IMG/VR virus record: IMGVR_UViG_3300042453_005404
Coordinates: 186,001 to 250,000 of that record
Strand: one strand, 5' to 3'
Length of the DNA stretch: 64,000 nt
Shown: positions 2,386-60,142 of the stretch, piece after piece
How positions within the stretch are numbered: position 1 is the stretch's first letter
Layout of the letters: each line of letters opens with the position of its first letter
Notes under the pieces: generated by a model
Databases searched by the model: none
Seen by the model: the letters and a program-made list of their open reading frames with translations, nothing else
Told to the model about the DNA's origin: nothing
Position numbers and translations under genes: made by a program

Positions 2386-3258
2386 ATGCAAAAGCTAAAA
2401 CACAACAAAAAACGAAACACTGGATTGCTGTACGAGTTCTTTACACGTTACATTGGAAAAGCTATTTTAGAAAACAAAGACAACGATATCGGTAAAGCAA
2501 AAACGTTGTTAAAGAAACACTTCAACAAAGGAACAGACACTTACAAAGAACTAAAGCTTTTTAAAGCTTTATCTGAAAGTACCGTTTCTAGTCGTGAACA
2601 AGCATTGCATCTAATCAACAGAATTCGTGAAACAGTTAAACTGCAAAGTCAAGCTCGTTTGGATTTAGAAAAAACAAGCTTGATTCATGAAGTTAATGCA
2701 AACCTAAACGCAGATCTTTTTTTCGAAGAAACAATCCCAGATTATAAAAAACTTGCAACCATTCAAGTGTTGTTAAACACTTGGAGAGATGAAACTCTTA
2801 AAGAATCTGTAAGCGAAACAATTCAACTTGAAGAACGTCTTGTTGAGTTTATGCTGGAGAAACGAAACACAGCCGAACAAGCTACAGAAGCCGCTAGCAT
2901 GACAACCGAAGATGTTGATCGTCTTGTTGTTAATATAATGACAGAAAAAGTTAATAACCGTTATAACAGTCTTAATACAGAACAAAAAGATATCATTCGT
3001 TTGTTTGTGTTTAGCAAAGATAATGAAACATCAAAAAAACAACTTTCTGAGAGTTTAGAAAAACTTAAGCGTCGTTTTCTTGGAACTGTTGCCGCTCACT
3101 CTCATGAGTTTTCGACCGACACAGTTCTAATGAACAAACTCAATGAAATCCGCACTACACTACAAAAAGATTATGACGACACTTCAGTTATTACTGAAGA
3201 ACTTGTAACCTTCTATCTTGGCTTATCAAAACTAGAAGGAGAGGTTAAGGCAAAATGA
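2386..3258 (+). CDS. conserved hypothetical head-cluster protein
   Basis: 290-aa ORF between portal and protease, 4-nt overlap with the protease start; N-terminus KLKHNKKRNTGLLYE resembles proteins I recall at this position in large T4-like phages. Confidence 0.75.
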   Translation: MQKLKHNKKRNTGLLYEFFTRYIGKAILENKDNDIGKAKTLLKKHFNKGTDTYKELKLFKALSESTVSSREQALHLINRIRETVKLQSQARLDLEKTSLIHEVNANLNADLFFEETIPDYKKLATIQVLLNTWRDETLKESVSETIQLEERLVEFMLEKRNTAEQATEAASMTTEDVDRLVVNIMTEKVNNRYNSLNTEQKDIIRLFVFSKDNETSKKQLSESLEKLKRRFLGTVAAHSHEFSTDTVLMNKLNEIRTTLQKDYDDTSVITEELVTFYLGLSKLEGEVKAK

Positions 3259-3866
3259 ACGACAAAAAGTTTCTTCTCAAAGAGTTTACCGCCTTTGAGT
3301 ACAACGATTTAGATCTAGATAAAAGAGAAGAAGGAAAGCCACTTGTTCTTAATGGCATTCTTCAAAAAGCTAACACATTAAACCAAAACGGTCGTGTGTA
3401 TCCTCGTCATATCCTTGAACGTGAAATCCGTAACTACGAAAAACTTATTCGTGAAAACCGTGCATTCGGTGAACTAGACCATGCTAATGAACCAATCGTC
3501 AACATGAAAAACATTTCTCACGTTATTCGTGAGATTTGGATGGAAGGTGACGTAGTGTATGGTAAGGTAGAAATACTTGATACACCATGCGGTAAGATTA
3601 TCGAATCAATCATCAAGGCAAAGTGCAAGCCCGGTATCTCCAGCAGAGCTCTTGGTTCTCTTCAAAGAGAAAACAATGTAAACGTTGTTCAAGATGACTT
3701 GCAGATTATTTGCTGGGACTTTGTGAGCGAGCCATCAACTCCCAATGCTTTTATGACATTATCAGAAGCAAAGATCATCGACGGTGAAACTGCTAGAAAA
3801 GCCTTTAAAAAGAGCGATTTTGTTGAAAGAGCAGCCAACGAAATCCTATCCCTCAAAACAAAATAA
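3255..3866 (+). CDS. gp21: prohead core protease, T4 gp21-like
   Basis: GILQKANTLNQNGRVYP, GELDH (catalytic His), GISSRALGS (catalytic Ser), WDFVSEPSTPNAF. Confidence 0.93.
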   Translation: MNDKKFLLKEFTAFEYNDLDLDKREEGKPLVLNGILQKANTLNQNGRVYPRHILEREIRNYEKLIRENRAFGELDHANEPIVNMKNISHVIREIWMEGDVVYGKVEILDTPCGKIIESIIKAKCKPGISSRALGSLQRENNVNVVQDDLQIICWDFVSEPSTPNAFMTLSEAKIIDGETARKAFKKSDFVERAANEILSLKTK

Positions 3867-3947
3867 CAACCATACCTGATACTTATTTCTAACCATACCA
3901 AGACCATACCGAAATATATTCTTGGTGGGTTAGAAAGAGAACGTTCT

Positions 3948-4316
3948 ATGTTGTTTTTTTATCAAGGTTATTCATCTTAGATGAATAAGCCAGACGTAAA
4001 AGAAAATCTACGGCAACAGCTTACGGGTAAGACGAGCGTTGAAAGGTACGGAGAAGCAAAAGCTGCGGAAGTGAAAAGAAAGCAAAGTTTATCTCGTAAG
4101 GGAAAATATACAGGCCAAGAAAGTTCAAGGTACAAAATTTTGAAAGATATACAGTTATGTTCTCCAGACGGAATGATTTATACTAATATTGAAGGAATCA
4201 AAGAATTTGCCGAGAAGCATGGTTTATCAAAAAATCATCTTTCTGAACTTTTATCTGGAAAAAGAAAAACACACCATGGATGGCACCTAGTTAATACAAA
4301 AGGTGATAATTTATGA
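3948..4316 (+). pseudogene. internally deleted GIY-YIG-family homing endonuclease: 10-codon N-terminus, TAG, then the DNA-binding part (ORF 3981..4316)
   Basis: MLFFYQGYSS* (3948-3980) resembles MEYKYEGHSL at the start of 15417; C-terminal SPDG...FAEKHGL...LLSGK...HGW module aligns without gaps to that of 15417; no catalytic motif present. Confidence 0.65.
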
Positions 4317-4426
4317 TGGCAGAAGCTAAACAATACGTTGCAAACATTGTTAAGACTGTGTTTACCAAAAGCGATCTTGTTGATCGTGCTGCAAACGAAA
4401 TATTAGCTCTTCGCAAAAAATCTTGA
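4313..4426 (+). pseudogene. orphan second copy of the protease C-terminus (37 aa, MMAEAKQYVANIVKTVFTKSDLVDRAANEILALRKKS)
   Basis: Aligns to protease 3753-3866 (MTLSEAKIIDGETARKAFKKSDFVERAANEILSLKTK); shared EAK, KSD, RAANEIL. Confidence 0.8.
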
Positions 4427-4465
4427 AACAATTTATCGCTAGTAAACAATAAGAAGTAACATACC

Positions 4466-4990
4466 ATGAAAATCCAAAAAACAGAGTTTAAAACGATTGT
4501 TAAAGAGTGCCTTAAGGAACTTGTTGCCGAGGGCGCATTAGATCATATGGTTAGTGGAATGCTTGCTGAACGCTCAAACGTTTTACAACAACAAGCTGTT
4601 ATGCAAGATCCAAGAATCAAAATGGCTGCAAATGGCAATCCAGTAATGCAACAAATATTTGCCGATACAGCTGTTACTTCGCTTCCAATGCAACAACAAG
4701 GTATTATGCCAAATGGAATGACTCTTCCCGCTGGAGTTAATCTTGCTATGCTTGGAGAAAATCTATCTTCGCCTTCTTCTTTTGGTTATGTTCCACAAGC
4801 ACGTAATCCATTACCTCCAAGAGATCCAAATGCTGTTGCTGCACTTCAACAAATGGCTCAACCACAGCAAACCCCTGCATCTACATGGGCTCGTTTAGCT
4901 TTTAACTCACCCATTTCAAACCGTCCCGGTGGACCAAGAGGCACCGGAGAAAATCATCTTCCCGGTTCTAAAAAAGGTACTTTCGAATAA
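4466..4990 (+). CDS. hypothetical protein, probable internal head protein
   Basis: ORF track; N-terminus KTEFKTIVKECLKE plus MLAE and MLGE sites; head-cluster location. Confidence 0.7.
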   Translation: MKIQKTEFKTIVKECLKELVAEGALDHMVSGMLAERSNVLQQQAVMQDPRIKMAANGNPVMQQIFADTAVTSLPMQQQGIMPNGMTLPAGVNLAMLGENLSSPSSFGYVPQARNPLPPRDPNAVAALQQMAQPQQTPASTWARLAFNSPISNRPGGPRGTGENHLPGSKKGTFE

Positions 4991-5731: not shown

Positions 5732-7990
5732 ATGTCAACACCCTTGTACCAAGAAGCCTTGATTGAAGCAAAAAAGCTTCGTGATGCAGCAGCAGCCGAA
5801 GCAAAAAATGCAGTTCTAGAAGCTGTGTCTCCATTGATCAAACAAATGATCGATAAAGAAATTTCTGGAATCATCTTGGAAGAAGGGGAACCACCTCCCG
5901 CACCAGAAGCTTCAGCCGATGTACCTCCACCTTCTCCACCAGCGCCTTCACCAGATGCAGGCTCAACAGGTCCAATCGGTGCTGCGCCTGCTGCCGGTGC
6001 GGAGGCCAAACCAACAATGCCGGGAATGACACCAGCAGTTGCTGCTGCTGCTCCTCCAATCAAATCTCCCGGCAGTGAAGTTATTGGCAAAATCGGTGTT
6101 GGACCAAATGGAGAACAACAACTCGTTGTCGATGTTGATTCTCTTTTTGAAAAAGAACCATTGCCAGCAACAACAGCAACAACAGCCATAACCCCCCCAG
6201 CAGAGGCAACACCCTCTACAGAAACAGCAGGATCAGAAGCTATGCCTCCAAATCCATCTTCACCAGAAGGTGAACAAACACCACAATCTCTTGAAGAAAT
6301 TTATCGTGCTGTACGTCGTTTCCTAAGTGAAGCAGATGCTCCTGCTCCTCCTGCTCCTCCTGCTGCTCCAGCAGCTCCTCCTGCTGCTCCTCCTGCTGTT
6401 CCTGATCCTGCTGCTCCTCCTGCTGTTCCTCCTGCTGTTCCTCCTGCTGTTCCTCCTGCTGCTCCTCCTGCTGCTCCTGATCCTGCTGCTCCTCCTGCTG
6501 TTCCTCCTGCTGTTCCTCCTGCTGTTCCTCCTGCTGCTCTTGATCCACTCAATCAAGCTGCGGGAGCAGCTCCAGTTCCACCACCAGTTCCACCACCGGG
6601 AGCAGCTCCAGTTCCAGATGCAAGTGCTCCACCTCCACCTGTAACTCCTGCTCCAGCAGCAGCGGGTGCTCCTGCTCCACCAATGCAAACTGAATACAAA
6701 ATCTTTAAACAAAACCTTGAACGTGCAGAAGGTTTGGTTAAAGCATTGCGTAGCAAGCAAGAAAATGGAAACATGTTGTTTTTGAAAGAAGCTTATGAAA
6801 AGCAACTTTTTTCACTTTATAACAACTTGCTTGGTTTAAAGGCAAAAAATGCAATATCCCCTAGACTATTTTCTTTCAATGAAGACAGATTGGGATTGCT
6901 ATATGAAAATCTGAACGTAATCACTAGTTATAAGCAAAATCCATTAACAAAGGGTAATATCATGGCAAAGAATAATTCATTGAAAGATTTAGTTAAATCA
7001 CTTTTTGAAGGTGCCGAAGGTTTTGAAGTAAAGGCACCAAATAAAATTGATCCCGCTGGAGATTCAACAGGTATCGACGACGAGCACCCTAAAAGTCATT
7101 CTGGTAATCCAAAAGGTATCAGAGTAGAAGCTGAAGATGCTCCATTCAGAACTAAGGAAAAGAAAGATTGGCCCGGTAAGCCATCACCAGAATCTCTTCT
7201 AGAACAACTAGAAGAAGAAATCGGTGAGCTTATGGCCGAAATGGAAAGGGATGGAACGAGCGACGATAGCAATCCATCAGACGAAGTTGTTCTTGAGCTT
7301 TCAGACAATGAAGTAATGTCTGAAGCTCGTAAGGCTCGCTCTCGTCTTAAGGCTCTTCGTGAACAAGCAGAAGACAGCCTTTCACTCACCATCGATCTAA
7401 AGGGTGTATCTGGTAAAGAAGTAGAAAATGTCAACGTATCGATTGATGGTGAAGAACTTGACGTTGATATGGAAGGCGGCGAGGAAGGTGAATTTGAAAT
7501 CGGCATGGAAGACGTTGAAGAGCCAGAAGACGACGTTAAAGAGCCAGAAGAATCAGAGGAAGACGACGTTGAAGAGCCAGAAGAAGAATCAGATTCGGAA
7601 GAAGAATCAGATTCGGAAGAAGAACTTCAAGAATCTCGTAGAATTGTTCGCAGAGCTATTAATGAAACCAAAACTCTTCGTGGACAGCTTCACGAGACAC
7701 AACTATTAACAGCTCGTTCATTGTATGTAAATAAGCTTTTCGTGAGGGACGAATTGACCGGGACACAAAAACGCAAAATCGTTGAGTATCTCGACAGTGC
7801 CAACACATTGGGAGAAGCAAAGGAAATCTACAATCGTATTGTACGTGTACTGGATGCTGGAAAGAAAAATGGGGAACTGATGAACGAATCAGCAGACCGT
7901 CCAGCACGAATGCTAGTAGAATCTGTAGAGCCAAGCTTCGACACTGCCCGCTGGCAAATTCTTGCTGGTGTGCGGAGAAACACAAAGTAG
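5732..7990 (+). CDS. prohead scaffold/core protein with Pro/Ala-rich and acidic regions
   Basis: Directly upstream of the major capsid gene; N-term YQEALIEAKKLRDAA, C-term LTARSLYVNKLF...ARWQILAGV; many LxE/MxE candidate protease sites. Confidence 0.75.
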   Translation: MSTPLYQEALIEAKKLRDAAAAEAKNAVLEAVSPLIKQMIDKEISGIILEEGEPPPAPEASADVPPPSPPAPSPDAGSTGPIGAAPAAGAEAKPTMPGMTPAVAAAAPPIKSPGSEVIGKIGVGPNGEQQLVVDVDSLFEKEPLPATTATTAITPPAEATPSTETAGSEAMPPNPSSPEGEQTPQSLEEIYRAVRRFLSEADAPAPPAPPAAPAAPPAAPPAVPDPAAPPAVPPAVPPAVPPAAPPAAPDPAAPPAVPPAVPPAVPPAALDPLNQAAGAAPVPPPVPPPGAAPVPDASAPPPPVTPAPAAAGAPAPPMQTEYKIFKQNLERAEGLVKALRSKQENGNMLFLKEAYEKQLFSLYNNLLGLKAKNAISPRLFSFNEDRLGLLYENLNVITSYKQNPLTKGNIMAKNNSLKDLVKSLFEGAEGFEVKAPNKIDPAGDSTGIDDEHPKSHSGNPKGIRVEAEDAPFRTKEKKDWPGKPSPESLLEQLEEEIGELMAEMERDGTSDDSNPSDEVVLELSDNEVMSEARKARSRLKALREQAEDSLSLTIDLKGVSGKEVENVNVSIDGEELDVDMEGGEEGEFEIGMEDVEEPEDDVKEPEESEEDDVEEPEEESDSEEESDSEEELQESRRIVRRAINETKTLRGQLHETQLLTARSLYVNKLFVRDELTGTQKRKIVEYLDSANTLGEAKEIYNRIVRVLDAGKKNGELMNESADRPARMLVESVEPSFDTARWQILAGVRRNTK
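6340..6540 (+). repeat. Pro/Ala coding repeat (CCTCCTGCTG(C/T)T units) with an exact 63-bp duplication at 6401-6463 and 6476-6538
   Basis: Read directly; 75-nt period. Confidence 0.9.
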
Positions 7991-15407: not shown

Positions 15408-15416
15408 TAACGTTTT

Positions 15417-16382
15417 ATGGAATACAAATACGAAGGTCATTCACTTAAATCCGGTATCTACAAAATCACAAACAAACTAAACGGAAGAATCTATATTGGT
15501 TCTGCTAAACGTTTCAAGGAACGGTGGCAATCTCACGTTTACTCTCTGAGAAATCAAAAACACAACAATAGTTTTCTTCAAGCGGATTTTAACAAATGCG
15601 GAGAAGAAGCATTTGTGTTCGAAGTATTGGAAGTTACAGAAGGCAAAACTAAAGAAGAACGTTTGTTGATTGAAGAAGTTTATATCGGGCAATATTACGA
15701 CAAAGGTAACAGCTGCTATAATCTGTGTAGCCGAGCGATATCTAGAGAAAACACAAAAAGCAAAAACCCAGAAGAAACAAAACGCAAGATATCGGCTGCC
15801 ACAAAAAAGATGTGGCAAGACCCAGAAAAAGCGGCTAGTATACGCAGCTCTATGAAAAGTGCGCTATCAGATCCAGAGACAGCCAAGCGTCATCAAGAGG
15901 GTCGCATTCGTTCGTGGGAAAACAATCAAGAACGTCGTGCCGCTGCTTCGCAACGTATGTCAGAACGTATGACAAACAATACGGAAGAAACAGAGAAAGT
16001 TGTAGAGATTCTAAAAGCATCACAACCTAAAGGCAGAGACACTTTTAGGAAACGAATGAAAGAAGATACAGAGCTTCGACAAACTTATGTTGATATTGCA
16101 AAAAAGAAAGCTGAAAATCTAAACGAGAGATACAAGAATGATGCTGAGTATAAAGCGATGATGGATAGAAAATCTATAGAGAACATCAAAGCGTATAACG
16201 AAAAACAAGCACAAAGCATACCAGTCAAAGCTCCTTTGGTATCACCAGATGGAATAGTTTATTCAGATGTTCGCAGTTTGAATGCATTTGCCAAAGAACA
16301 TGGTTTAGATTCAAGTTCTCTTTACAAGCTTTATTCTGGCAAGCTGAACGAAGTAAAAGGTTGGAAGCTATTTATAGAATAG
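15417..16382 (+). mobile_element. free-standing GIY-YIG homing endonuclease
   Basis: SGIYKITNKLNGRIYIGSAKRFKERW, FEVLE, E, YNL; helical linker; C-terminal NUMOD1/HTH-like module. Confidence 0.9.
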
Positions 16383-18366: not shown

Positions 18367-18445
18367 AACGGTGTCCTCGCAGGTAAACAGGTTTTCGGTA
18401 TCTATTTATGCCGTAGAACTTTAACCATAAAGTGAGGACAACATT

Positions 18446-21400
18446 ATGCCAGAAACAGTTTTAAAAGCCCCAAATTACTTTGATCGTGAGTTTGACTTAA
18501 CTGAACGAACGATTCCTGTGGGTGGAACTCCTGCAACCGTTATTGGTGGAGCAGAAAGAGGCCCAGCATTCGTACCAGTAACACTTGGTAGCTACACAGA
18601 TTTTGTTAATAAGTTTGGTGATGTAAATCCAAAATTTGTTGGCTCATATGGAGCCAAAGCATTTTTGGATGCAAAAGGAAGTGAACTTGCATCTGTCAAC
18701 TATATACGTATTCTTGGATGTGGTGCAAACAATACCTCGGTAGATATATCAACAACAGAAGCAGAAGGCACTGTTACAAATGCTGGTATGCAAGTTGTTG
18801 GAAACGGTACCGTGTTCGCTTCTGGGGCTCTTCAAGGACGTGTACAGTTTCTTGTTGGCAAACACGCAGTACAAACAAACGAAGTGTTTGGTATGCCAGA
18901 CTTTACCAACAACTCCAGCTATAACGTAAGTGGTTTCGGTGTAGACAATGACACCGTAAATCTTGTTCGTGCAGTTTTGTTCACAACCCCGGATTCACGC
19001 TTTCTTGTGTTGAGTGGTGCAGTTGATGCTGGTGGTGTATTCAACCCAACAGCTTATTTGTCTGCATTAGGCACCAATGAAGCGGCTCAAGTTGGTACCG
19101 AAGGACCAATGTCAGGTTTGTTTAAACTAGTTTTATCATGCTCTGCTGGTTCAAGCTTTGCTTCTGATGATGGTGTGGCTGGCCTTAAGATCTTTTCAGC
19201 TTCGCTCGATCCAACTTCAACACAATATGTTGGCAAGCTTTTAAACACAAACCCAGAAGATTTTGCATCAAAAAAACACTTGCTGTATTTGGATTACGCA
19301 GTTGATGCCGAGGTAGCCGCATTGTCGGCAAGTAACTCGGTTGCAACAGTTGCAGTGTTGTCGGGTTCCAGTAACACAAACAGTTTCGGCCACACATTTG
19401 GTAGAGCATTTGGTTTTTTCAACACACGTTTTAAAACACCAAAAACTTCATACTTTATCTCGCAACCATTTGGTGGAATTGAATATGATTTGTTTTATGT
19501 TGAAAGTCGTGACGATGGTGCGTTTGCCAACAGCAAATACAAAATCAGCATATCAAATATTCAAGCTTCAACAAATCCATCAACCAAATATGGATCGTTC
19601 ACTTTGTCTGTGAGAGCATTCAATGACACAGACGCAGAACCTCAAATCCTTGAACAGTTCAACAATCTTTCTCTTGATCCAGCCAGTGCCAATTACGTGG
19701 CAAGAGCAATTGGTGACAAGCGTACTCAATTCAACTTCGATGCAGTCGATTCAGATGATCGTGGAGTTGTCGTTCTTGGCAAATATGGCAACCGCAGCAG
19801 ATTTATTCGTGTTGTTCCAAGCTCACAACTTGAGAACGAGGAAGTACCAGAACTAGCTCTTCCATTCGGTTTCCGTGGTCATCAAATGCTTCTTACGAAC
19901 GTAGCACTGACTGACCAAACTGGTTCAGTGCCACTGAACCAAACCCGTATTTCTGGTGTTTCTGGAAGCCTTGCAGGTGGAGGTTGTGATTTGTCTGGGT
20001 CGATTGTTCCACCGGTTCCATATCGCTTTACAATCACCCGCAACCCACTTGCAAACACAGGAACAACATTTGGGGCTCCCGGCACACAAACAGTCCTAGA
20101 TGGTCGTCTTTACTGGGGTGTTAAGTTCGAACGCAATAACAACAATGTGCTAAACACGAACGTAAATGCAGAAATCAATCCAATTGTTGCGAACTTTTCC
20201 AAGTTCGCAGGCATCGAAAAACAAGAAGTATTGACTACTGGGTCTGCAAGCGATCTTTTGAACGATAATAAGTTCTCACTTGCGAGAGTTGCATTGAACG
20301 TAACTACGATGACGGCTGTGGCTTCAACAGACGTGCCAACATTGATGAAGTCTGCTGCATATCTTCGCAATGCAGAAATCGACCCAACCACGTATGCTGC
20401 AACAAACTTTAGCAACCGTTTGACCTTTGCATCGCTACTAAACAGTGGCAGTGCTGTGCAATATAACAACTTCTCAAATTATGCTAAGTTCACAACCTTT
20501 ATGCAAGGTGGATGGGATGGAGTTAACATCTTTGACAAGCAAGCAGCTAGATTCACCGATCAATCAACTTCTACCGAATCAGGAGCGGGTGGTGTATATG
20601 GTCTTGCAAATGCAAGCTATGTTTCTCCCGGTGCCCCAACAGCAACAAACTATACTGGTGTAGACTCTGCAAACCAAAACGTTGTTGCATATCGCACAGC
20701 ACTAGACATTGCAACCAACTCAAGCATTGCCAACAACAATATTCTTGCAACACCGGGACAACGTGATCCGCTTGTAACCAACTATGCTCTAGAGAAAAAC
20801 ACAAGCTACGGTTTGAGCTTTTATCTTCTAGACATTCAACCATATGACAAAGATAGCGTTCGTATCTTTGATGGTGAAGCAGGCCGATATGTGTCTATTG
20901 GCAAAACAACAAATTTGTTTTTAAATCGTGCTTTGGATAACAATGCCGCTGCTGCTTATTTCCCAAACATTGTTGTTGATGACACTGTTAACACTCGCCG
21001 TGTAACTCTCCCAGCTTCTATTGCAGCAATCTCTGCACTAAGCTACAACGACCGTGTTAAGTTCCCATGGTTTGCTCCAGCAGGATTTGATCGTGGTTCT
21101 CTAAACTTTGTTCTTCAAACATCTATCAGAGTTAACCAAACAGATCGTAACACACTTTATGATGCAAACATTAACCCAATTGTGAAGTTTCCCGGTGCAA
21201 ACTATGTGTTCTTCTCACAAAACACTCTACAACAAGCTGAAAGTGCTTTGGAAAGCATTAACGTTAAACGTATGATACTGGAAGTCAAACGTCAGATTGT
21301 TGCTATCGGCAATCGTTTGATCTTTGAACAAAACACTCCAGCACTACGCACACGTTTTGTTAGCGAAGCATCTTTGGTTCTTGCAACAGTCAAACTTCAA

Positions 21401-21562
21401 CAAGGCATCGAACAGTTCGCAGTTATCTGTGATGAACGGAACAACAGCGCAGAAGACGTTAACAGCAACCGTATGAATGCACAAATCAGAGTGCTTCCAA
21501 CAAGAGCAATCGAATACGTTGTAATGGATTTCGTTGTGTTGCCATCGGGAGTTGCATTGTAG
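18446..21562 (+). CDS. gp18: tail sheath protein 1
   Basis: GGAERGPAFVPV, FGDV, PWFAPAGFDRG, LYDANINPIVKFP, INVKRMILEV, PTRAIEYV. Confidence 0.92.
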   Translation: MPETVLKAPNYFDREFDLTERTIPVGGTPATVIGGAERGPAFVPVTLGSYTDFVNKFGDVNPKFVGSYGAKAFLDAKGSELASVNYIRILGCGANNTSVDISTTEAEGTVTNAGMQVVGNGTVFASGALQGRVQFLVGKHAVQTNEVFGMPDFTNNSSYNVSGFGVDNDTVNLVRAVLFTTPDSRFLVLSGAVDAGGVFNPTAYLSALGTNEAAQVGTEGPMSGLFKLVLSCSAGSSFASDDGVAGLKIFSASLDPTSTQYVGKLLNTNPEDFASKKHLLYLDYAVDAEVAALSASNSVATVAVLSGSSNTNSFGHTFGRAFGFFNTRFKTPKTSYFISQPFGGIEYDLFYVESRDDGAFANSKYKISISNIQASTNPSTKYGSFTLSVRAFNDTDAEPQILEQFNNLSLDPASANYVARAIGDKRTQFNFDAVDSDDRGVVVLGKYGNRSRFIRVVPSSQLENEEVPELALPFGFRGHQMLLTNVALTDQTGSVPLNQTRISGVSGSLAGGGCDLSGSIVPPVPYRFTITRNPLANTGTTFGAPGTQTVLDGRLYWGVKFERNNNNVLNTNVNAEINPIVANFSKFAGIEKQEVLTTGSASDLLNDNKFSLARVALNVTTMTAVASTDVPTLMKSAAYLRNAEIDPTTYAATNFSNRLTFASLLNSGSAVQYNNFSNYAKFTTFMQGGWDGVNIFDKQAARFTDQSTSTESGAGGVYGLANASYVSPGAPTATNYTGVDSANQNVVAYRTALDIATNSSIANNNILATPGQRDPLVTNYALEKNTSYGLSFYLLDIQPYDKDSVRIFDGEAGRYVSIGKTTNLFLNRALDNNAAAAYFPNIVVDDTVNTRRVTLPASIAAISALSYNDRVKFPWFAPAGFDRGSLNFVLQTSIRVNQTDRNTLYDANINPIVKFPGANYVFFSQNTLQQAESALESINVKRMILEVKRQIVAIGNRLIFEQNTPALRTRFVSEASLVLATVKLQQGIEQFAVICDERNNSAEDVNSNRMNAQIRVLPTRAIEYVVMDFVVLPSGVAL

Positions 21563-21634: not shown

Positions 21635-21677
21635 ATTCTTCTATTTATCGTTAACGTTTGATATACGGAGATAAAAC

Positions 21678-24600
21678 ATGGCATTATTAAGCCCCGGCGT
21701 ACTAGCAAGAGAATTTGACATCAGTCAGCCAAGAACAACAACACCTTCTGGTGTTCCTGCTTTGGTTATTTCTACAACAACCAAAGGCCCAGCGTTTGTT
21801 CCAACCATGGTTACAACATTGTCACAATACGTATCAGTGTTTGGAGGAGTGAATGCTAACACACCATTAGGCTATCTTTCTGCAAGAGAATGGTTTGGGA
21901 ACACAGGCGTTCCTCTTATGCAGCTTAGAGTGCTTGGAGCTGGCCAAGGCTTGGCACGTAACGCAAATGGTACTGTGACTGACGCAGGCTTTATTGTTGG
22001 TGCTCAACAGCCAAGCGGATCTGGCGGGGCTCTGGGAGATAACGTGTTTGCAAACGCTACAGGTGTAACCGGGTCTGTATATATGCTTGGTTGCTTTATG
22101 AGCGAATCATTAGATTCAACATATCTTTCTGATGCAGGATTGCAAAACGATACAACGGCGGTACCAATCATTCGTGGTGTGTTGTTTGCTCCATCTGGTG
22201 TTGTTCTTCGTTTGTCTTCCGCAGCGCAGCCATCAAATGCACCCGCTTCAAACTTTGTTGCGACTGAAACTAGCTTTTCTGGTGGATTCACTGGGTCTGT
22301 TTCTTTAAGCGCCGGTCAACAAAACTTTGTAATGATTCTTAACGGCCATAAAGGAACAGATCTACGCTATCCAAATGCAATCACTGCCAGCTTTGACCCA
22401 CAAGCCGTCAACTATTTTCCAAGTGTATTCAATACCGATCCTCTTAAAACTCAAGAAGCTGGCCACTTGTTATATGCAAGCTTTGATGTTTATTCTGCAA
22501 TAGCAGTACCAACTGGTTCTGGTATAATCGAAGCAGCTAGCGGATCAGCTTTTGGAACCTTGCAAAATATTGCATTTATTGTTCCTTCTTCTGGTTCTGC
22601 TGCAACACACACATCGAATGTAGGTTCTAGCATTACACCAAACTTTGAAGGATTTGAAGATCGTTACGGTCACGCTTTTTCTCCTTGGGTGATATCGCAA
22701 GGATTTGGTGGAGTTCCACAAAATCTTTTCCGTTTTCATCATCTTTCGGCTGGTGAATCAGGAAACGGCGATGTAAAGATATCAATCACGAATATTCAAC
22801 CGGGAACGGCAACAAGTCCATATGGTGTGTTTACAGTGCTTGTCAAATCGATGACCGGATTGGATGGAGATGGAGCCTTGGAAACGTTTACCAATTGCTC
22901 GCTTGATCCAAGTTCACCAAACTATATCGCTCGTAAGATTGGTACCATTAACACGTTTTTTAACTTTGATACCGATGTTGCTTCACAAAAAGTAACAACA
23001 GATGGATCATATCCAAACAAATCAAATTATGTTCGTGTTGAAGTTGCTGATGCTGTTGATGCTGGTGAAATCGATCCTTCGGCTATGCCGTTTGGTTTCC
23101 GAGGCCCTCAACACCTTGTCACGCAAGGTTCGAGCTCTCTTTACAACATTAAACAAGGAGACTTGACAAATCCAGCTTTCCCATACTTCTCAAATCTTGC
23201 TGGTGGTTCTGGAGGCGGTGTGCCTCTATACAAAGCATCTCAACCACCAGTTCCAATGCGCCTAAACCTTAAGAAGCTTGCTGCTTCTTCTGGTGTTGAT
23301 ACAGGACTTTATTGGGGCGTGCAGTTCGAAAACGTAACAAGTCTTTCTGATCCAAACGGCAGCAATATATTCAATCCAAGCTTGCTTGGATATAGCAGAT
23401 ACTTTCCAAATCTTGTAGGATCAACAAACGTACAACCAGCGGTATTTGACAACAACGGTTCTGCTACAACTACCGCAAATGGAATCGTTGATTCCGATCT
23501 CTTTAACAATAACCTTTTCTCTCTAGAAAAGGTTAAGATTGTTACAGGTTCGGGTGATCGTCCAAACACCACCACCGCTGCTCTTCTAAGCTGGAGTTAC
23601 GTTCGTGCGGGTGGTATTGCCGCAGATGAAGCTACAAAAACAAGAGCGTTGTCTGTAAATGATCTTGTGGAAAACGCAGCGGTACAAACACTTGCCAAAT
23701 TTAGCTTTTATCTTGAACGTGGTTTTGACGGCGTAAGAATCTTTAACCCAGACACACGTTATCTTAAGAACGCTGCGGTGGCTCAAGAAATCACACAAAC
23801 AACTCGTGGTTTAACAAATGGTCCAACGGTTAGAAGCTATTTGAAGAGCATTGACATTATCTCAGATGTAAACGATGTTAACATTCAACTTCTTACAATA
23901 CCCGGCATACGTGATCGTTATGTCACCGACACAGCAATCGCCGCTGTAGAAAATGATCGATTTGATTGTTTCTATATCATGGACCCAGAACAATACGATG
24001 TAAACGGAACGTCAATCACAGGTTCATATGAAACTGTAAACGTTTCACAAACAGCAGCAGCGTTTGTTGCCCGTGGAGTTAACTCAAGTTTCGTTGCAAC
24101 TTACTTCCCAGATGTAAACATTGTTGGACCAACTGGTACAGTTTATGAAAAGGTACCACCATCTGTTGCAGTTCTTGGTGCGTTTGCTAAGAACGATACA
24201 GTTGGTCAACCATTCAATGCACCAGCAGGCTTTACAAGAGGCACGCTAACTAACGTAACAGATTTTGCTGTATCACTCAACCAAGCCAACTCTGATATCC
24301 TTTACGTGGCAAGATTGAATCTTCTTCTTTCCAAATCAGGCGTTGGTCCAGTTGTTTGGGGTCAAAAAACTCTACTCAACAAAGACAGCTTGCTTAACAG
24401 AGTTAACGTAAGAAGACTTTTGATCGCAATTCGTCGTGATGTGCGTGCGGTTGCAACACGCTTCTTGTTCGAACCAGCACAGTCTTCAACGCTTGCAGCA
24501 TTTAATGCAGCAGTTCAACCAATCATGGCACGTTACCAATCTGCTGGTGGTGTAGAAAAATACAAAGTTGTTATTGACACAACAACTACAACACAAGCCG

Positions 24601-24710
24601 ATTTGGACAACAAAACTCTGCGTGGAAAGATTTTCCTAATCCCAACCACATCTCTAGAGTTCTTCACAATCGACTTCTTTGTTACAAATCGTGACAGCTT
24701 CGTTGGTTAA
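21678..24710 (+). CDS. gp18: tail sheath protein 2
   Basis: LLSPGVLAREFD, TTKGPAFVPT, APAGFTRG, VVWGQKTL, RVNVRRLL, PTTSLEFF. Confidence 0.92.
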   Translation: MALLSPGVLAREFDISQPRTTTPSGVPALVISTTTKGPAFVPTMVTTLSQYVSVFGGVNANTPLGYLSAREWFGNTGVPLMQLRVLGAGQGLARNANGTVTDAGFIVGAQQPSGSGGALGDNVFANATGVTGSVYMLGCFMSESLDSTYLSDAGLQNDTTAVPIIRGVLFAPSGVVLRLSSAAQPSNAPASNFVATETSFSGGFTGSVSLSAGQQNFVMILNGHKGTDLRYPNAITASFDPQAVNYFPSVFNTDPLKTQEAGHLLYASFDVYSAIAVPTGSGIIEAASGSAFGTLQNIAFIVPSSGSAATHTSNVGSSITPNFEGFEDRYGHAFSPWVISQGFGGVPQNLFRFHHLSAGESGNGDVKISITNIQPGTATSPYGVFTVLVKSMTGLDGDGALETFTNCSLDPSSPNYIARKIGTINTFFNFDTDVASQKVTTDGSYPNKSNYVRVEVADAVDAGEIDPSAMPFGFRGPQHLVTQGSSSLYNIKQGDLTNPAFPYFSNLAGGSGGGVPLYKASQPPVPMRLNLKKLAASSGVDTGLYWGVQFENVTSLSDPNGSNIFNPSLLGYSRYFPNLVGSTNVQPAVFDNNGSATTTANGIVDSDLFNNNLFSLEKVKIVTGSGDRPNTTTAALLSWSYVRAGGIAADEATKTRALSVNDLVENAAVQTLAKFSFYLERGFDGVRIFNPDTRYLKNAAVAQEITQTTRGLTNGPTVRSYLKSIDIISDVNDVNIQLLTIPGIRDRYVTDTAIAAVENDRFDCFYIMDPEQYDVNGTSITGSYETVNVSQTAAAFVARGVNSSFVATYFPDVNIVGPTGTVYEKVPPSVAVLGAFAKNDTVGQPFNAPAGFTRGTLTNVTDFAVSLNQANSDILYVARLNLLLSKSGVGPVVWGQKTLLNKDSLLNRVNVRRLLIAIRRDVRAVATRFLFEPAQSSTLAAFNAAVQPIMARYQSAGGVEKYKVVIDTTTTTQADLDNKTLRGKIFLIPTTSLEFFTIDFFVTNRDSFVG

Positions 24711-52575: not shown

Positions 52576-53286
52576 ATGGCTGGTTTTAACCCTAACAGAA
52601 AAAAGAAAACTTATTCACTTAATCGTTCGCAGCCATCAAAGGTTATTGCAACGATTGTTGATGGAAAAGTTGAATACTTTGACGAAACGCTGGTCACGGT
52701 TGATAACCCATACTATCAACTTCAAACAGCAACAAGTCAGGGTTTACCTCCACCTCCTCCACCTCCCCCCCCAGCCGAATACGATGAAGATGTTATAGAG
52801 TTCGATTGGACAGATACCGAGGTAGCAACCTTTAACATAACGTTTTCACAAAATCCTTATCTTACACTGGAAATACTTCCAGCAGAAGGATTTGAGAACA
52901 TAGCATTTTTTGCTAACAACTTATCAACAACAGGATTTATTGCACACGTTTCTGCTCCGTTTAGTGGACAGATTGTTTATCGTGCTATTGTGTCTCCAGT
53001 ATTCCCTGTTGTTATTGAACGTGTTGTTGTTAGTAGTTCATTTTACTACACAGCTTCTGCTGGAAAGATACCAGAAAGTTCGAACTCAGAGTTTGTTGCA
53101 ACATACAATCAACTGTTTCCAGCAACATATCCAACAAACTTATTCTTTACACCAATAGATGATAACAACAATGGAGATGCTGGTGTTGCGATTGTTGCAA
53201 CTGGTTCGTTTGGTTTAACAAGTACAGAAGTAACCTATTCTGCACCAGTATATAACTCTATACACTATCTTGCAGTGAAACCTTGA
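52576..53286 (+). CDS. probable structural protein
   Basis: ORF track; poly-Pro linker; ATACTTAA motif at 52556. Confidence 0.65.
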   Translation: MAGFNPNRKKKTYSLNRSQPSKVIATIVDGKVEYFDETLVTVDNPYYQLQTATSQGLPPPPPPPPPAEYDEDVIEFDWTDTEVATFNITFSQNPYLTLEILPAEGFENIAFFANNLSTTGFIAHVSAPFSGQIVYRAIVSPVFPVVIERVVVSSSFYYTASAGKIPESSNSEFVATYNQLFPATYPTNLFFTPIDDNNNGDAGVAIVATGSFGLTSTEVTYSAPVYNSIHYLAVKP

Positions 53287-53305
53287 GAGTTGGAGAGATG
53301 TAATA

Positions 53306-54994
53306 ATGGCATACGATTTTAGAGCAAATCAAGTACGATTAAACCGAATCATCTCTTCTGGTTCTATCCCAATCTTAATTTATCCATCTAGTAGCGCAGC
53401 AGATTTTGCTGGCAACCTTGATCCCAGCTTTTCTACAACTTCTATTGGATCAGACGTATTTTTTTATGTTTCTGGAAGTTCAACCGCAAAAACAGTTTTT
53501 GGTGGAGACGTATTATCCTCTGGTTCACTAAGCTCTCTTAAAGGAATAACTGGTTCTATACAGTTCACAAACGCTGCTAGCACACCTTTCATTCTCGGCG
53601 GCTCAGATATAACTGTTAATTACAACTCTTTTGGACAGTGGGAAATATCTGGATCAGAATCCAACTTCTTTACATCTCCAAACAACAACGTTGTACAAAC
53701 AACCGGTTCGCTGCTTGCTGTTGGGTTGTCTTCTTCGAATGGAGCACAAATAACAGGCAGTTTGCAAGTTCTTGGTGGAATAACAGGTTCTCTTAGCGGT
53801 ACTATTGCTGGCAATCCTTTTATTGTTGGTGGCGCAAACATCATAGCCAACTACAACTCTCTTGGTCAATGGGAGATTACAGGATCTGGTGGTGGCTCAA
53901 ACGTTTGGACCGAGCTTAATGCTACCACAATATACACAACCAGTTCTATTCGTGTTGCACAAGTATCAGCTTCGCTTGGAGCTATTATTACTGGTAGCGT
54001 TGTTCAAGGAGTAGGTTGCACGGCAGTCAATAACTCACACGCCGAAGGTTATCAGTCAGATGTTTCGGCAGGAAACTACGGTCACGCAGAGGGCTATCAG
54101 ACAGATGTAGGGGGCGAAGCTGCACACGCTGAAGGTAACAGTACAACTGCTGCTGGTGATTATTCACACGCAGAAGGTATTAATACCGATGCCAATGGCA
54201 ACTATGCTCACAGTGAAGGCAACGGAACAACGGCTGCGGGTGAAGGCTCACATGCTGAAGGCAGAGACACTCAAGCAAACGGAGATTATTCTCATGCTGC
54301 TGGATATCAAACCATTGCAGCTGGTGATTATTCTTTTGCTGGTGGTAACAACACAGAAGCTTTTGCGAACTATCAAACAGCTATTGGTAAGTTCAACATA
54401 ACAAGCAACTCAGATTCTTTATTCGTTGTTGGTGACGGCTTAAACACTGGCAATCGTCATGACGTTTTAAGAGTTAACAGTGGTTCAGTTCAAGTGACAG
54501 GTTCATTGTTTGTTACACAAACAATGTCCGCAAGTATTGTAAGTGCTTCATATGTTCGTGCTAATGGAATAAATATCACTCCAGTTGTTGCTCAACTCAC
54601 AATAGGTGGTGATAACACAAACCGTGCCAGTGGATCTATTTCTGGATTGTTCGAATCTGGTTCTCTTATGGTTCCGGGTACCATTGGCAAGTTCGACGTA
54701 GAAGTTCTTGCAATGGATTATAACTTTGAAACAGGAGCAAGTTGGAAATATACCGTTACCGCTCTTTGGCCTTATTCTGGAAACTTTTCTTTTCTTGCTT
54801 CTACGGAAATAGCAGTCGAATATGGGCCAACAGCAGGTTCGTATAACCCAACAAACGATTGGGATGTAAACTTCAACAGTCTTGGACAAATAGAGCTTAC
54901 AGGATCTGCTCCAGCATTTCCTAGTGGTGGAACAAGTTTTTATGTACAAGTAACCAAGAAAATGATTGGTGGCTACGGAACGATTATTGCGTAA
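53306..54994 (+). CDS. fibre/adhesin-like virion protein with YadA-head-type 14-aa repeats
   Basis: About 8 xSHAEGxxTxAxG repeats (~54030-54370); modules shared with 55073 and 58697. Confidence 0.7.
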   Translation: MAYDFRANQVRLNRIISSGSIPILIYPSSSAADFAGNLDPSFSTTSIGSDVFFYVSGSSTAKTVFGGDVLSSGSLSSLKGITGSIQFTNAASTPFILGGSDITVNYNSFGQWEISGSESNFFTSPNNNVVQTTGSLLAVGLSSSNGAQITGSLQVLGGITGSLSGTIAGNPFIVGGANIIANYNSLGQWEITGSGGGSNVWTELNATTIYTTSSIRVAQVSASLGAIITGSVVQGVGCTAVNNSHAEGYQSDVSAGNYGHAEGYQTDVGGEAAHAEGNSTTAAGDYSHAEGINTDANGNYAHSEGNGTTAAGEGSHAEGRDTQANGDYSHAAGYQTIAAGDYSFAGGNNTEAFANYQTAIGKFNITSNSDSLFVVGDGLNTGNRHDVLRVNSGSVQVTGSLFVTQTMSASIVSASYVRANGINITPVVAQLTIGGDNTNRASGSISGLFESGSLMVPGTIGKFDVEVLAMDYNFETGASWKYTVTALWPYSGNFSFLASTEIAVEYGPTAGSYNPTNDWDVNFNSLGQIELTGSAPAFPSGGTSFYVQVTKKMIGGYGTIIA

Positions 54995-55072
54995 ATAAAG
55001 ATAAGTTTATTCTTCTATTTATAGTGTGTCCATGAATTTGTTAAGTGGACCACAAAGAGGAGTAAGAACATC

Positions 55073-56551
55073 ATGGCTATTAAACGTAAAACTCATTTGA
55101 ATCTAAGTGGTTCCCACCATACCTTAGATTCAGACAATGCTTTTGTTGGTGGAACGTTATACATCACAGGAACTCTTTCTGCTTCTGCTGGTATCACCGG
55201 TTCTATTCATTACGTTGATGCAGTTGGATCAGTTCCATTTCTTGTTAATGGAACAAACATTACCACAAACTACAACTCATTAGGTCAATGGGAAATCACC
55301 GGGTCGGGTGGTGGTGGATCTGTTACAGGATCAAACACACAAGTTCAATTTAACGATGATGGTGCATTTGGTGCAAGCTCGCTTCTAACTTTTAACACAG
55401 CAAGCGTTGGAAATGTTGGAGTTGGAACTCTAACTTATCTCACTGGTGCTGTAGGTTATCTTTCTGGTTCAAACATCGACAACCAAGCCTACACACTTGT
55501 AATGTCTGGTGTGGCCGACGTAGAGCTCGCCACTCCGGGTTTCTTTGATCCCGCTCTCGTTGTTAAAACTCCTGTTTTGATGACTCAAAGCTTGATGCTT
55601 TTTGATGGAATACACGATCCGTTTAATTTAGGAGTAGATACGAGCCTTCCCGGTGGTGGAATCGCACTTGCGAATGGCTCTAGATTTACACTTCATTCTG
55701 GCTCATGGACACCTTTGCCATCTGACTCTGGAGGTAAAGATCCAGTTGTAACTGTTGAAGTTGACACAAACGGTTCTGGTTCAGTACAAGTCGTGGGGTC
55801 ACTACTAGTACAAAGCGCAAGCTTAGACCAATATAATGTTTTCAGCGTAGTACCCTCGACCACTGCTAACCAACTACGCATGACACATGTCGGAGAAGCA
55901 AGCTTTATTTCCGGCGCAGTCAACTTGTCGCACAATGCTTCGATCCTATTTAGATCAGGCAGCAGCAATGACCACGGATTCGAAGTTAGCCCTTCTAATG
56001 CATCTGGTGGTGCTAGATTAAGAGTTAACAGCGGTAGTATTGAGTTTAACTCAAGTAGCCAAGATGCACAAGTTGGAAATACTTCGTTCCTTATTCGAGC
56101 TTCTACAGATGCACATAAAGCAGATGTTATCTTCGATAAAGGTTTAGACGATGTTTCATTTGTAGGTATCAACGTTCGTCCGCTATATGTCACAATGTCT
56201 ACAACAACTGCAACAGGAACTGAACTAAGCGGCAGTTTGTTGGCAAGTTTACTTAAAGAAGGATCTGTTGGTAAACTTGATTTCAACGTTGTTGCAGCAG
56301 CATCAGCAACAGACGATTATGCAAGCTGGACATTCTCAACCACCGTAAGAAGAAATCAAGCTGGCACAACTTTGGTTCTTGCCGCAACAGAACTAGATTC
56401 GATTACTGAAGGTACAAATGCTTCAGCTTGGGACGTTAACGTTAACAGCGATGGCACTATTCAATGCACTGGTTCTGCCGGAACAGTTAACTGGTATGCT
56501 CAAGTAACCAAGAAAATGATTCTTTCTGGATCTGGCATGATTGTTTACTAG
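55073..56551 (+). CDS. fibre-like virion protein, paralogue module of 53306
   Basis: NYNSLGQWEITGSGGG; C-terminal WDVNVNSDG...YAQVTKKMI domain. Confidence 0.65.
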   Translation: MAIKRKTHLNLSGSHHTLDSDNAFVGGTLYITGTLSASAGITGSIHYVDAVGSVPFLVNGTNITTNYNSLGQWEITGSGGGGSVTGSNTQVQFNDDGAFGASSLLTFNTASVGNVGVGTLTYLTGAVGYLSGSNIDNQAYTLVMSGVADVELATPGFFDPALVVKTPVLMTQSLMLFDGIHDPFNLGVDTSLPGGGIALANGSRFTLHSGSWTPLPSDSGGKDPVVTVEVDTNGSGSVQVVGSLLVQSASLDQYNVFSVVPSTTANQLRMTHVGEASFISGAVNLSHNASILFRSGSSNDHGFEVSPSNASGGARLRVNSGSIEFNSSSQDAQVGNTSFLIRASTDAHKADVIFDKGLDDVSFVGINVRPLYVTMSTTTATGTELSGSLLASLLKEGSVGKLDFNVVAAASATDDYASWTFSTTVRRNQAGTTLVLAATELDSITEGTNASAWDVNVNSDGTIQCTGSAGTVNWYAQVTKKMILSGSGMIVY

Positions 56552-58672: not shown

Positions 58673-58696
58673 CTATATATCTTGTAAAGGTAACAC

Positions 58697-60142
58697 ATGG
58701 CAAACTCTATTGATTTTCGTGCAGATCAAGTTCAAACAAGCAAAATCATTGTCACTGGTAGCACACCACAAAAAACGCTTTTGATTTACGGTATCGATGC
58801 TCAATATACACCATTAAATCAAGGCAACATCGATCCAGCTAAGTTTGACACAACAGTTGTTGGCACAGATGTATTTTTGTTTGTTTCTGGTGGTATTGGT
58901 GCCCGAGGAGGAACAGATCCTTGGATAACTGCTATTGGTGGTGACCTTCATATATCTGGCAACTTGACAGTTGACGGAACTAGTCCCGGTGGATCAGGTG
59001 GCAACAACTTCTTTTTTTCAAACACTTTGGATGTTATAGAAACTTCTGGGTCAATTAAGCTTTCTGGTTCTTTGCCTTTGCAAACGACATATTTGTCGGC
59101 TTCTGTTGGAGTTGAAATAACAGGATCATTTGTGCAAGGTACAGCTACAACAGCTTCTGGTGATTATTCTCACGCACAAGGAAACGGCACTACTGCTTCT
59201 GGCACTAACGCTCATGCAGAAGGAGATGGTTCTACTGCATCTGGCCCTAATTCTCACGCCGAAGGCTATCAAACAACTGCTTCTGCTGATCAAACTCACG
59301 CCGAGGGTTATCAAACAACTGCTTCTTCTCCAAATTCTCATGCAGAAGGAGCTGGCACTACTGCTTCTGGTAAAAAAGCACACGCAGAAGGCGAAGGATC
59401 AGTAGCTTCTGGTGATGTAAGCCATGCAGAAGGATATTACTCAACTGCGTCTGGTTATTCTTCTCATGCTGAAGGTTCTGGATCTATAGCTGCTGGGGAT
59501 TATTCTCATGCAAAAGGATATGGTTCTGAAGCATTTGGAACCGGTTCGCTTGCTGTTGGTTTATATACTGTAGCTTCTGGTGCTGTTGATGGGGCATCTC
59601 CACCAACAACAACGCAAGCTGCTTTTGGGAAATATAACTTAAGAGATAATGTTGATTCTTTGTTTGTTGTTGGTGACGGTTTAGATGATTTAAATCGTCA
59701 CGATGTATTGCGAGTTAACTCTGGATCAGTTCAAATAACTGGTAGCTTGTTTGTTAACGGAACACAAATAACCAGTTCGATCCAAAAAATCAATATCGCT
59801 GGATATAACAGAACAAACTATACATCTCCAACCGTAATCGGTCTGGCTTACTTTGATCCAAGCGAATACACAACGTTTCCCAACATAGCTTTCACAGCAG
59901 TTGGTATGAACATGGCTGGTGTTTCTGGTGGGTTAGATCTATACAATCAAAACACTTCAACCCTTGTTGCACAACTAACATGGAGCGGAAATGGCAGTAT
60001 AACCACAGGAAGCTTTCAAACAATAACGTTTTCAAAACCAGCTTCTGCAACAAGCTATGAGCTTCATTTCAGTCAAAGTGGTGGAGCAAATGGTGGTACT
60101 GATTATTCCACAGTTGGTTTCGTTAATTTTGTTTTGTCTTGA
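58697..60142 (+). CDS. fibre/adhesin-like virion protein with YadA-head-type repeats
   Basis: About 10 xSHAEGxxTxASG repeats (59162-59581); N-terminus DFRADQV paralogous to 53306. Confidence 0.7.
   Translation: MANSIDFRADQVQTSKIIVTGSTPQKTLLIYGIDAQYTPLNQGNIDPAKFDTTVVGTDVFLFVSGGIGARGGTDPWITAIGGDLHISGNLTVDGTSPGGSGGNNFFFSNTLDVIETSGSIKLSGSLPLQTTYLSASVGVEITGSFVQGTATTASGDYSHAQGNGTTASGTNAHAEGDGSTASGPNSHAEGYQTTASADQTHAEGYQTTASSPNSHAEGAGTTASGKKAHAEGEGSVASGDVSHAEGYYSTASGYSSHAEGSGSIAAGDYSHAKGYGSEAFGTGSLAVGLYTVASGAVDGASPPTTTQAAFGKYNLRDNVDSLFVVGDGLDDLNRHDVLRVNSGSVQITGSLFVNGTQITSSIQKINIAGYNRTNYTSPTVIGLAYFDPSEYTTFPNIAFTAVGMNMAGVSGGLDLYNQNTSTLVAQLTWSGNGSITTGSFQTITFSKPASATSYELHFSQSGGANGGTDYSTVGFVNFVLS

Follow-up and report, generated by a model that had tools for sequence, protein, structure and literature searches.

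The sequence analysed here (the window) is a stretch of 64,000 nucleotides, positions 186,001 to 250,000 of IMGVR_UViG_3300042453_005404, a 260-kb contig of an uncultured T4-like phage. Its head module reads portal (295-2319, Portal_T4), a 290-aa ORF and a prohead (head-maturation) protease gene (3255-3866). The 203-aa protease scores 98.8 bits against Peptidase_S77 (PF03420, cut-off 27), and is further matched by PHROG 207 (head maturation protease, E=7.5e-49) and by the structure of T4 gp21 (5JBL, E=2.3e-17). H76, S129/S130 and D155, the putative catalytic residues, are invariant in 32 homologues. The protease ends in a 37-codon tail (tail A), and a second 37-codon tail (tail B) lies 446 bp downstream as an orphan ORF, with the remnant of a GIY-YIG homing endonuclease gene between the two. 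The locus is organized as follows:

3255-3866 (+): prohead protease gene, now a hybrid of a native core and an imported tail
3255-3743 (+): native part of the protease core (backbone DNA)
3744-3752 (+): left end of the cassette, codons Asn-Ala-Phe replacing the Gly-Ala-Phe of insert-free alleles
3753-3866 (+): tail A, imported replacement for the last 37 codons, plus stop
3867-3947 (+): 81-bp cassette spacer with three copies of ACCATACC; with its neighbours it is predicted to fold into a hairpin covering the translation start region of the endonuclease
3948-3980 (+): 5' stub of the endonuclease gene, its first 10 codons followed by TAG, with the joint of a 441-bp deletion at 3977/3978
3981-4316 (+): endonuclease remnant, a 111-aa ORF holding only the C-terminal, putatively DNA-binding region (residues 159-269 of the intact enzyme)
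4299-4316 (+): right junction, where the end of the endonuclease ORF, containing an AAGGTGA Shine-Dalgarno-like string, overlaps the ATG of the orphan (ATGA); TTTATGA here repeats 3750-3756
4313-4426 (+): tail B, the displaced native tail, left as an orphan 37-codon ORF
4466-4990 (+): next backbone gene (174 aa, no family assigned), marking the right edge of the locus

The sequence-only reading had noticed that the end of the protease occurs twice, on either side of a homing endonuclease remnant, and this observation is confirmed. Indeed, a BLASTP comparison of the two 37-aa tails gives 17/35 identities and 23/35 positives without gaps (E=1e-10 for the pair), and in an all-against-all search of every ORF segment of 25 aa or more in the window, this was the only match between a short ORF and the end of a neighbouring gene (E=2.8e-6). 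At the DNA level, only the 3' 61 nt of the tails align, at 70%. The same layout appears in independent assemblies from other samples (loci L088-L092, L163 and L165-L167; L numbers denote the corresponding loci on other viral contigs, and P numbers proteins), so that an assembly artefact is excluded.

Native and imported tails

A blastn search of cultured phages with 3255-4426 returned nothing, and the best protein relatives are only 46-49% identical, so that all comparisons rest on metagenomic contigs. A scan of viral contigs gave 79 related loci. The closest insert-free relative, L002, has a protease core 99% identical to that of the window at the amino acid level, neighbouring genes 93-94% identical, and a single B-type tail which is 97% (aa) and 90% (nt) identical to the orphan, a divergence equal to that of the backbone. 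Six further insert-free relatives (L003-L005, L007-L009) likewise fuse the same core directly to a B-type tail, and in these seven loci the next gene starts 39-69 bp after the protease stop (39 bp in L002). L006 also has a single tail, but of A type. Thus, the possibility that insert-free relatives also carry both tails, named beforehand as a ground for rejecting the sequence-only reading, was not borne out. The DNA alignment shows one clean 560-bp insertion in the window, bounded on both sides by TTTATGA and lying about 10 codons after the conserved WDFV motif and 37 codons before the native stop.

In a tree of tail DNA, the tails completing the protease gene in carriers form a supported clade (95/99) with those of L093 and L006, i.e. 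with tails of other lineages, whereas the orphan tails sit among the functional B tails of the closest backbones. Tail B is therefore the native end, and tail A came from elsewhere. Tail A is under purifying selection among carriers (dN/dS 0.06-0.22), which indirectly indicates that it is the translated end.

The nature of the intervening gene was established from intact relatives. L010 has a 287-aa ORF directly after the protease gene with a GIY-YIG domain (PF01541, 28.3 bits against a cut-off of 22.6), and a database search found 35 homologues; the intact versions in L010, L168 and L096 all pass this cut-off (27.2-29.1 bits), while PF01541 is a precomputed annotation of one homologue, P0131 (269 aa). 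The remnant in the window is 99% identical to residues 159-268 of P0131 (110 aa), and residues 1-10 of P0131 match 3948-3977 at 100%. The alignment to L091 displays a single 441-nt gap at 3977/3978 and a mismatch at 3978 which, together with Glu-158 of L091, implies an in-frame loss of codons 11-157, that is, the whole catalytic domain, and a Glu codon turned into TAG at codon 158. The copy in the window, which lacks the GIY-YIG domain, is thus a remnant that cannot cut DNA, although it may still yield a DNA-binding fragment, since an ATG directly follows the TAG. The remnant matches the Pfam model I-HmuI_NUMOD-like (PF22083) at 21.6 bits (E=1.6e-4), below its cut-off of 27, as well as PHROG 2081 (HNH endonuclease, E=5e-9) and PHROG 925 (HTH DNA-binding, E=3e-6). 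No close relative of the endonuclease was found among cultured phages (best 30% identity).

In the spacer, ACCATACC occurs at 3869, 3892 and 3903, with one further copy in the window. The segment 3864-3955 folds in silico at -26.1 kcal/mol (z=-5.2), and the spacer is 98% identical to that of L091.

Movement, decay and collapse of the cassette

The intact form is found in L091 and L165, which carry the protease, tail A, the spacer, an intact 269-aa gene with the GIY-YIG domain PF01541, a 37-aa orphan and the next gene; L092 carries the same layout with a 289-aa variant. L165 belongs to the lineage of the window itself, with flanks differing by only 0.3-0.8%. By contrast, the window and L091 differ at 4 of 561 positions across 3744-4304 (0.7%) and at 192 of 2027 in the flanks (9.5%; Fisher p=1.6e-16). 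Mismatches are dense up to 3743, the native part of the core diverging at about 10% like the rest of the backbone, and again from 4305, and tail A shows 1/132 mismatches, whereas the orphan differs at 17%. Similarly, L088 and L163 differ by 11% in the junction and tail A, against 27-35% in the flanks (p=3e-6). Orphan tails diverge like their backbones. Accordingly, the cassette, which spans about 3744-4312, has a younger common ancestor than the genomes carrying it, and its edges coincide with those of the insert. It is present or absent at one locus among close relatives (L002-L009 are insert-free) and sits on at least four diverged backbones (window/L165, L091, L088-L090 and L163).

The same endonuclease family lies directly after the protease gene, with no orphan tail, in many lineages (L010/L097, L093, L094, L095 and L168-L173), of which L093 has an A-type tail. 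Moreover, a distant lineage, L096, whose core is only 55% identical to that of the window, has its own tail duplication around the same endonuclease family: direct repeats of the tail, identical over 123-125 nt, flank the gene, begin at the same Pro/Asn codon and include the stop region. This second event rests on a single contig, as a look-up for independent support retrieved only that contig.

The endonuclease gene has decayed at least four separate times: through the 441-bp deletion in the window, through a different internal deletion in L167, through loss of all but about 78 bp in L163, and through loss of all but 13 bp in L088-L090. Every carrier nevertheless keeps the right junction. L174, a close backbone relative of L163 (2.4-5.2% divergence in neighbouring genes), has no endonuclease gene and a chimeric tail, in which the first six codons equal tail A of L163 (18/18 nt) and the next ten equal its orphan (30/30 nt), with a crossover at the shared CAGAAGC. 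Either tail-by-tail recombination or short-patch repair would give this result, leaving a likely resistant, endonuclease-free allele.

A further signature is seen at the presumed target. The motif EPSTPGAF is nearly invariant across the family, Gly being kept in 39 of 48 distant homologues. Among the 70 closest cluster representatives, however, which form the endonuclease-exposed clade, this position reads M21, G19, N14, S10, A3, Q2 and L1, and all 51 non-Gly alleles carry non-MMAE tails. All six carriers whose left junction was read (window, L165, L091, L092, L088/L090 and L163) have AAT where insert-free relatives have GGT, and the Met allele (P0028) is followed by an intact endonuclease gene in all six contexts retrieved. 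L095 is an exception, as it has the endonuclease gene together with an unchanged PGAF-MM protein motif. We read this pattern as selection for resistance to cleavage at that codon, although this remains an inference. An AGC-to-TCA change at 3735-3737 was also considered as part of the cassette, but was discarded because L163, a carrier, keeps AGC and L003, which is insert-free, has TCA.

Origin of the cassette and comparison with known systems

These results support the interpretation put forward in the sequence-only reading, namely that an intronless element inserted within the 3' end of the protease gene, supplied a replacement end that keeps the gene intact, and displaced the ancestral tail downstream. 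Some refinements are nonetheless required: the foreign tract starts three codons earlier than proposed (just after EPSTPNAF), at the Asn codon 3744-3746, and the endonuclease is a GIY-YIG enzyme whose catalytic domain is deleted here. The statements that the insertion destroys the cut site and that the gene is essential remain inferences.

In our preferred explanation (probability roughly 0.8), a free-standing GIY-YIG homing endonuclease gene that normally sits just after the protease gene has, in this lineage, become a cassette inserted inside it, at the boundary between the conserved catalytic core (...EPSTPGAF) and the C-terminal tail. The cassette would consist of the last three core codons, a complete replacement tail with its stop codon, a regulatory spacer and the endonuclease gene, so that the protease would still be made as one polypeptide with no splicing. 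The analysis itself establishes that tail B is native and tail A imported, that the cassette is shared nearly unchanged among backbones that have diverged from one another, that the endonuclease decays repeatedly, and that a chimeric tail exists of exactly the form that collapse of the two tails would give. What we infer beyond this is the site-specific activity of the enzyme and the biased inheritance of the cassette, for which the evidence is only indirect (a shared breakpoint codon in two events and hypervariability of that codon), the use of the hybrid C-terminus in the virion, and the following scheme: the intact enzyme would cut insert-free alleles at or near the Pro-Gly codons (CCN GGT); repair would copy the cassette from a carrier, using the core as left homology and the orphan tail of the carrier as right homology, the cut site and the insertion site coinciding as in intron homing; and the Gly-to-Asn change plus the insertion would make carriers resistant to cutting. 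The simplest history, also inferred, is that an intergenic endonuclease of an A-type lineage cut the protease gene of a B-type phage at the core/tail boundary, and that repair copied the tail of the donor and the endonuclease gene, then rejoined at the short TT(T/C)ATGA homology rather than in the next gene. Once formed, the orphan tail would offer homology right next to the endonuclease gene, removing the need for the long resection that limits inheritance of ordinary free-standing endonucleases (PMC2988022). On the other hand, very short co-conversion tracts on both sides are unusual for T4-type homing, and the unchanged motif of L095 indicates that the Gly codon is not always altered in carriers. 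The intact orphan tails with low dN/dS could be explained by recent invasion, but also by continued function.

Several other scenarios could be envisaged. Introns carrying endonuclease genes are common in T4-like phages (PMC2988022), both tails have the same length, and the orphan begins exactly where the native tail would, so that removal of 3753-4312 from the transcript might have been suspected. This is, however, very unlikely: no Rfam family matches 3400-4700 at E<=1, tail A is in frame, ends in a stop (leaving no continuous ORF for protein splicing) and is under purifying selection, and the L174 chimera uses the start of tail A as coding sequence. In addition, the intervening DNA is cut down to about 40 bp in L088-L090 and about 110 bp in L163 and exists in two unrelated spacer types, so that no ribozyme core is conserved. 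A local tandem duplication followed by divergence and independent arrival of the endonuclease gene is also improbable for the window, where tail A nests with functional tails of other lineages rather than with tail B and where the cassette is far less diverged between backbones than its flanks; no close relative with two B-type tails and no A-type tail was found among the loci examined. It could nevertheless fit L096, whose identical copies are what a fresh local duplication looks like.

Ordinary illegitimate recombination between co-infecting phages, with the endonuclease gene as a mere passenger, deserves more consideration, since phage genomes are mosaic, the role of the nuclease is inferred from sequence alone, the copy in the window is dead, and nuclease genes are reported to mark boundaries of genetic exchange between phages (PMC10448857). 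We still regard it as unlikely, because the same codon is the breakpoint in two independent events with the same endonuclease family, the near-identical tract ends within about 10 bp of the insert on both sides, and one codon is hypervariable only in the exposed clade. Finally, and compatibly with the main explanation, the orphan could be translated through coupling to the endonuclease ORF (the ATGA overlap and the AAGGTGA string) and kept by selection as a small peptide. The orphan ORF is indeed intact in all nine carrier sequences read, which include five distinct tail alleles, the four independent endonuclease deletions all spare the 13 nt before its ATG, its dN/dS (0.02-0.3) is similar to that of functional tails, and both differences between L088 and L090 are synonymous. 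However, at 114 bp it is about one-seventh the size of the endonuclease gene as a mutational target, so that zero hits is expected by chance, most of the divergence between orphans predates orphaning, and L174 shows that the orphan can be absorbed back into the gene. This possibility is thus considered doubtful.

The closest precedent is found in the mobile endonuclease ORFs with C-terminal duplication of fungal mitochondrial genes (Allomyces macrogynus atp6, and Glomus atp6/atp9/cox2/nad3; PMC3630166). The design is the same: an endonuclease ORF inside the 3' part of a conserved gene is preceded by an in-frame foreign C-terminus that completes the gene, the native C-terminus being displaced downstream. 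The native copy matches close relatives while the inserted one is divergent (63.5% nt between the two Glomus atp6 copies, against 70% over the alignable 61 nt here), and GIY-YIG enzymes occur in both. In the present case, the host is a structural-gene module of a double-stranded DNA phage rather than an organelle genome, the endonuclease ORF is separate, with its own start under a predicted hairpin, rather than fused in frame as in some fungal cases, and the full cycle is visible in population data (intergenic form, cassette, four decays and a collapsed chimera). Literature searches, which covered open-access text only, found no phage report of an endonuclease with a duplicated gene end, and the 2010 T4 review (PMC2988022) does not contain the word stem ‘duplicat’.

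The free-standing Seg endonucleases of T4 (SegF, SegG and SegB), associated with ‘intronless homing’ or marker exclusion, share with the intact form of the present element a GIY-YIG catalytic domain followed by a C-terminal region that is putatively DNA-binding here, a position between essential genes of a T4-like phage, presence or absence among close relatives, and an RNA hairpin over the start region, predicted here, as described for segB, mobE and I-TevI (PMC2988022). Yet Seg genes are intergenic and cut at a distance inside a neighbouring gene, so that inheritance needs long resection and co-conversion, whereas here the gene lies inside the target gene with a duplicated tail, and the inferred cut site and the insertion site coincide. 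In the case of mobE in nrdA of Aeromonas phage Aeh1 and mobA in T4 gene 60 (‘genes in pieces’), a free-standing endonuclease gene is inserted within an essential phage gene without an intron or intein, but the host gene is split into two polypeptides that must reassemble (PMC2988022); here the gene stays whole because the element supplies the missing end. Intein- and intron-borne homing endonucleases also target the most conserved part of an essential gene, their insertion disrupting the target, but no splicing element was detected at the present locus at the RNA or protein level. A distant relative, L078, has a LAGLIDADG-type intein in this same protease gene, at the GELDH motif, and an Rfam search of L078 returned nothing.

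A mechanism known from fungal mitochondria since the 1990s is thus extended to phages, which suggests that the same solution has arisen more than once, and one set of natural sequences captures every stage of the life cycle of the element. The finding shows how a free-standing endonuclease gene can occupy the inside of a presumably essential phage gene with no splicing machinery. For annotation, short orphan ORFs after phage structural genes may be displaced gene ends, and gene-end phylogenies can be misleading. For phage evolution, endonuclease activity, itself inferred here, is linked to modular swapping of a protease tail and to a hypervariable codon, which may be a visible trace of an arms race over a cleavage site. 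A bolder reading, which we consider about as likely as not, is that phage homing endonucleases have a third way, besides introns and inteins, to live inside essential genes, namely a self-contained end-replacement cassette whose displaced native tail serves as the right-hand homology arm for homing. Its life cycle (intergenic gene, cassette, decay and tail-by-tail collapse) would continually produce chimeric protease tails and drive hypervariability of one codon in an otherwise invariant motif, and selfish-element conflict would then be the main source of diversity at the C-terminus of a core virion-assembly enzyme.

The predicted structure is consistent with tolerance of a tail swap. An AlphaFold model of the protease (mean pLDDT 76.5) gives a confident fold for residues 11-158, a low-confidence linker at 160-173 (pLDDT below 50) that holds the junction, and a helical tail at 177-202, while T4 gp21 (5JBL) aligns through residue 182. 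Glu171 is invariant in 32 homologues and lies in an L/M-x-E context resembling the T4 protease cleavage motif. The tail may therefore be a removable targeting peptide, which would explain why swapping it is tolerated, but this is speculative.

Two apparent leads were dismissed. In a protein search with the natural 46-aa end of the L002 protease, the one 44-aa hit whose contig was retrieved (P0162) lies at a contig end and not after an endonuclease gene, and the similar P0160 was treated in the same way. In S-RIM2, the two features under the protease match are just a small upstream ORF overlapping the protease start.

Other selfish elements in the portal–protease region and beyond

Beyond the endonuclease remnant that follows the prohead protease gene, the following loci of the window and of a relative were compared with regard to selfish elements:
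15417-16382 (+), window: a second free-standing GIY-YIG endonuclease gene
295-2319, window: the portal gene, 674 aa, with no intein
2717-4393, distant relative L078: the protease gene, a 558-aa ORF with a probable intein

The second GIY-YIG gene encodes 321 aa as an ATG-started ORF and matches PF01541 at 37.6 bits, as scored on the 323-aa stretch 15411-16379. Judged from its sequence, this gene looks intact, and its C-terminal region resembles the remnant at 3981-4316 (41% over 46 aa). No duplicated gene end lies next to it.

The portal–protease module is a hot spot for selfish elements. Whereas the window's portal is free from inteins, the portal gene of many close relatives (L088-L093, L169, L170, L172 and L174) is 1053-1452 aa long and displays intein domains (PF14890, with HNH_3 in some). 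In L078, the protease ORF contains an in-frame insert of approximately 355 aa at the GELDH motif. This insert starts with Cys, ends in Asn followed by Cys, and contains a LAGLIDADG-like motif, so that it is probably an intein, and no Rfam hit was obtained. This represents a different way of invading the same gene.

Spacer hairpins and mosaic structure of the endonuclease gene

Every spacer located before the endonuclease start folds into a stable predicted hairpin:
3864-3955, window: -26.1 kcal/mol, z -5.2
305-365, relative L092: -14.7 kcal/mol, z -3.1
3905-3965, relative L093: -17.0 kcal/mol, z -3.5

In L092 and L093, the hairpin pairs the AAGGAG/GAGGAG ribosome-binding site, as described for T4 I-TevI, segB and mobE. 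The window's spacer also holds three copies of ACCATACC.

The endonuclease gene is itself mosaic, as indicated by the comparison of L092 (360-1229) with the relatives L091 (4001-4810) and L093 (4001-4834). The enzyme of L092 combines an N-terminal catalytic domain like that of L093 with a C-terminal DNA-binding part 95-97% identical to the window's. The two cassette subtypes also have unrelated spacers.

The protease linker and other large ORFs

Residue E171 of the window's protease (codon 3765-3767), the Glu in ...L-S-E-A-K / M-A-E-A-K, is invariant in 32 homologues and lies within a linker predicted as disordered. By analogy with the motif of T4, this residue may be a self-processing site of the protease.

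Several large ORFs were also detected in the window:
5732-7990 (+): a 752-aa ORF with no family match
18431-21559 and 21675-24707: a first pair of paralogous large ORFs
53279-54991, 55025-56548 and 58694-60139: further paralogous large ORFs

The 752-aa ORF contains long Pro/Ala repeats (PAAPPAVPP-type) and an acidic Glu/Asp/Ser-rich stretch, and by position it may be a scaffold or core protein. Its low complexity creates long spurious ORFs on the opposite strand. The paralogous ORFs are adjacent or nearby, with 29% identity over 1084 aa for the first pair and 39-43% over 106-303 aa for the others.
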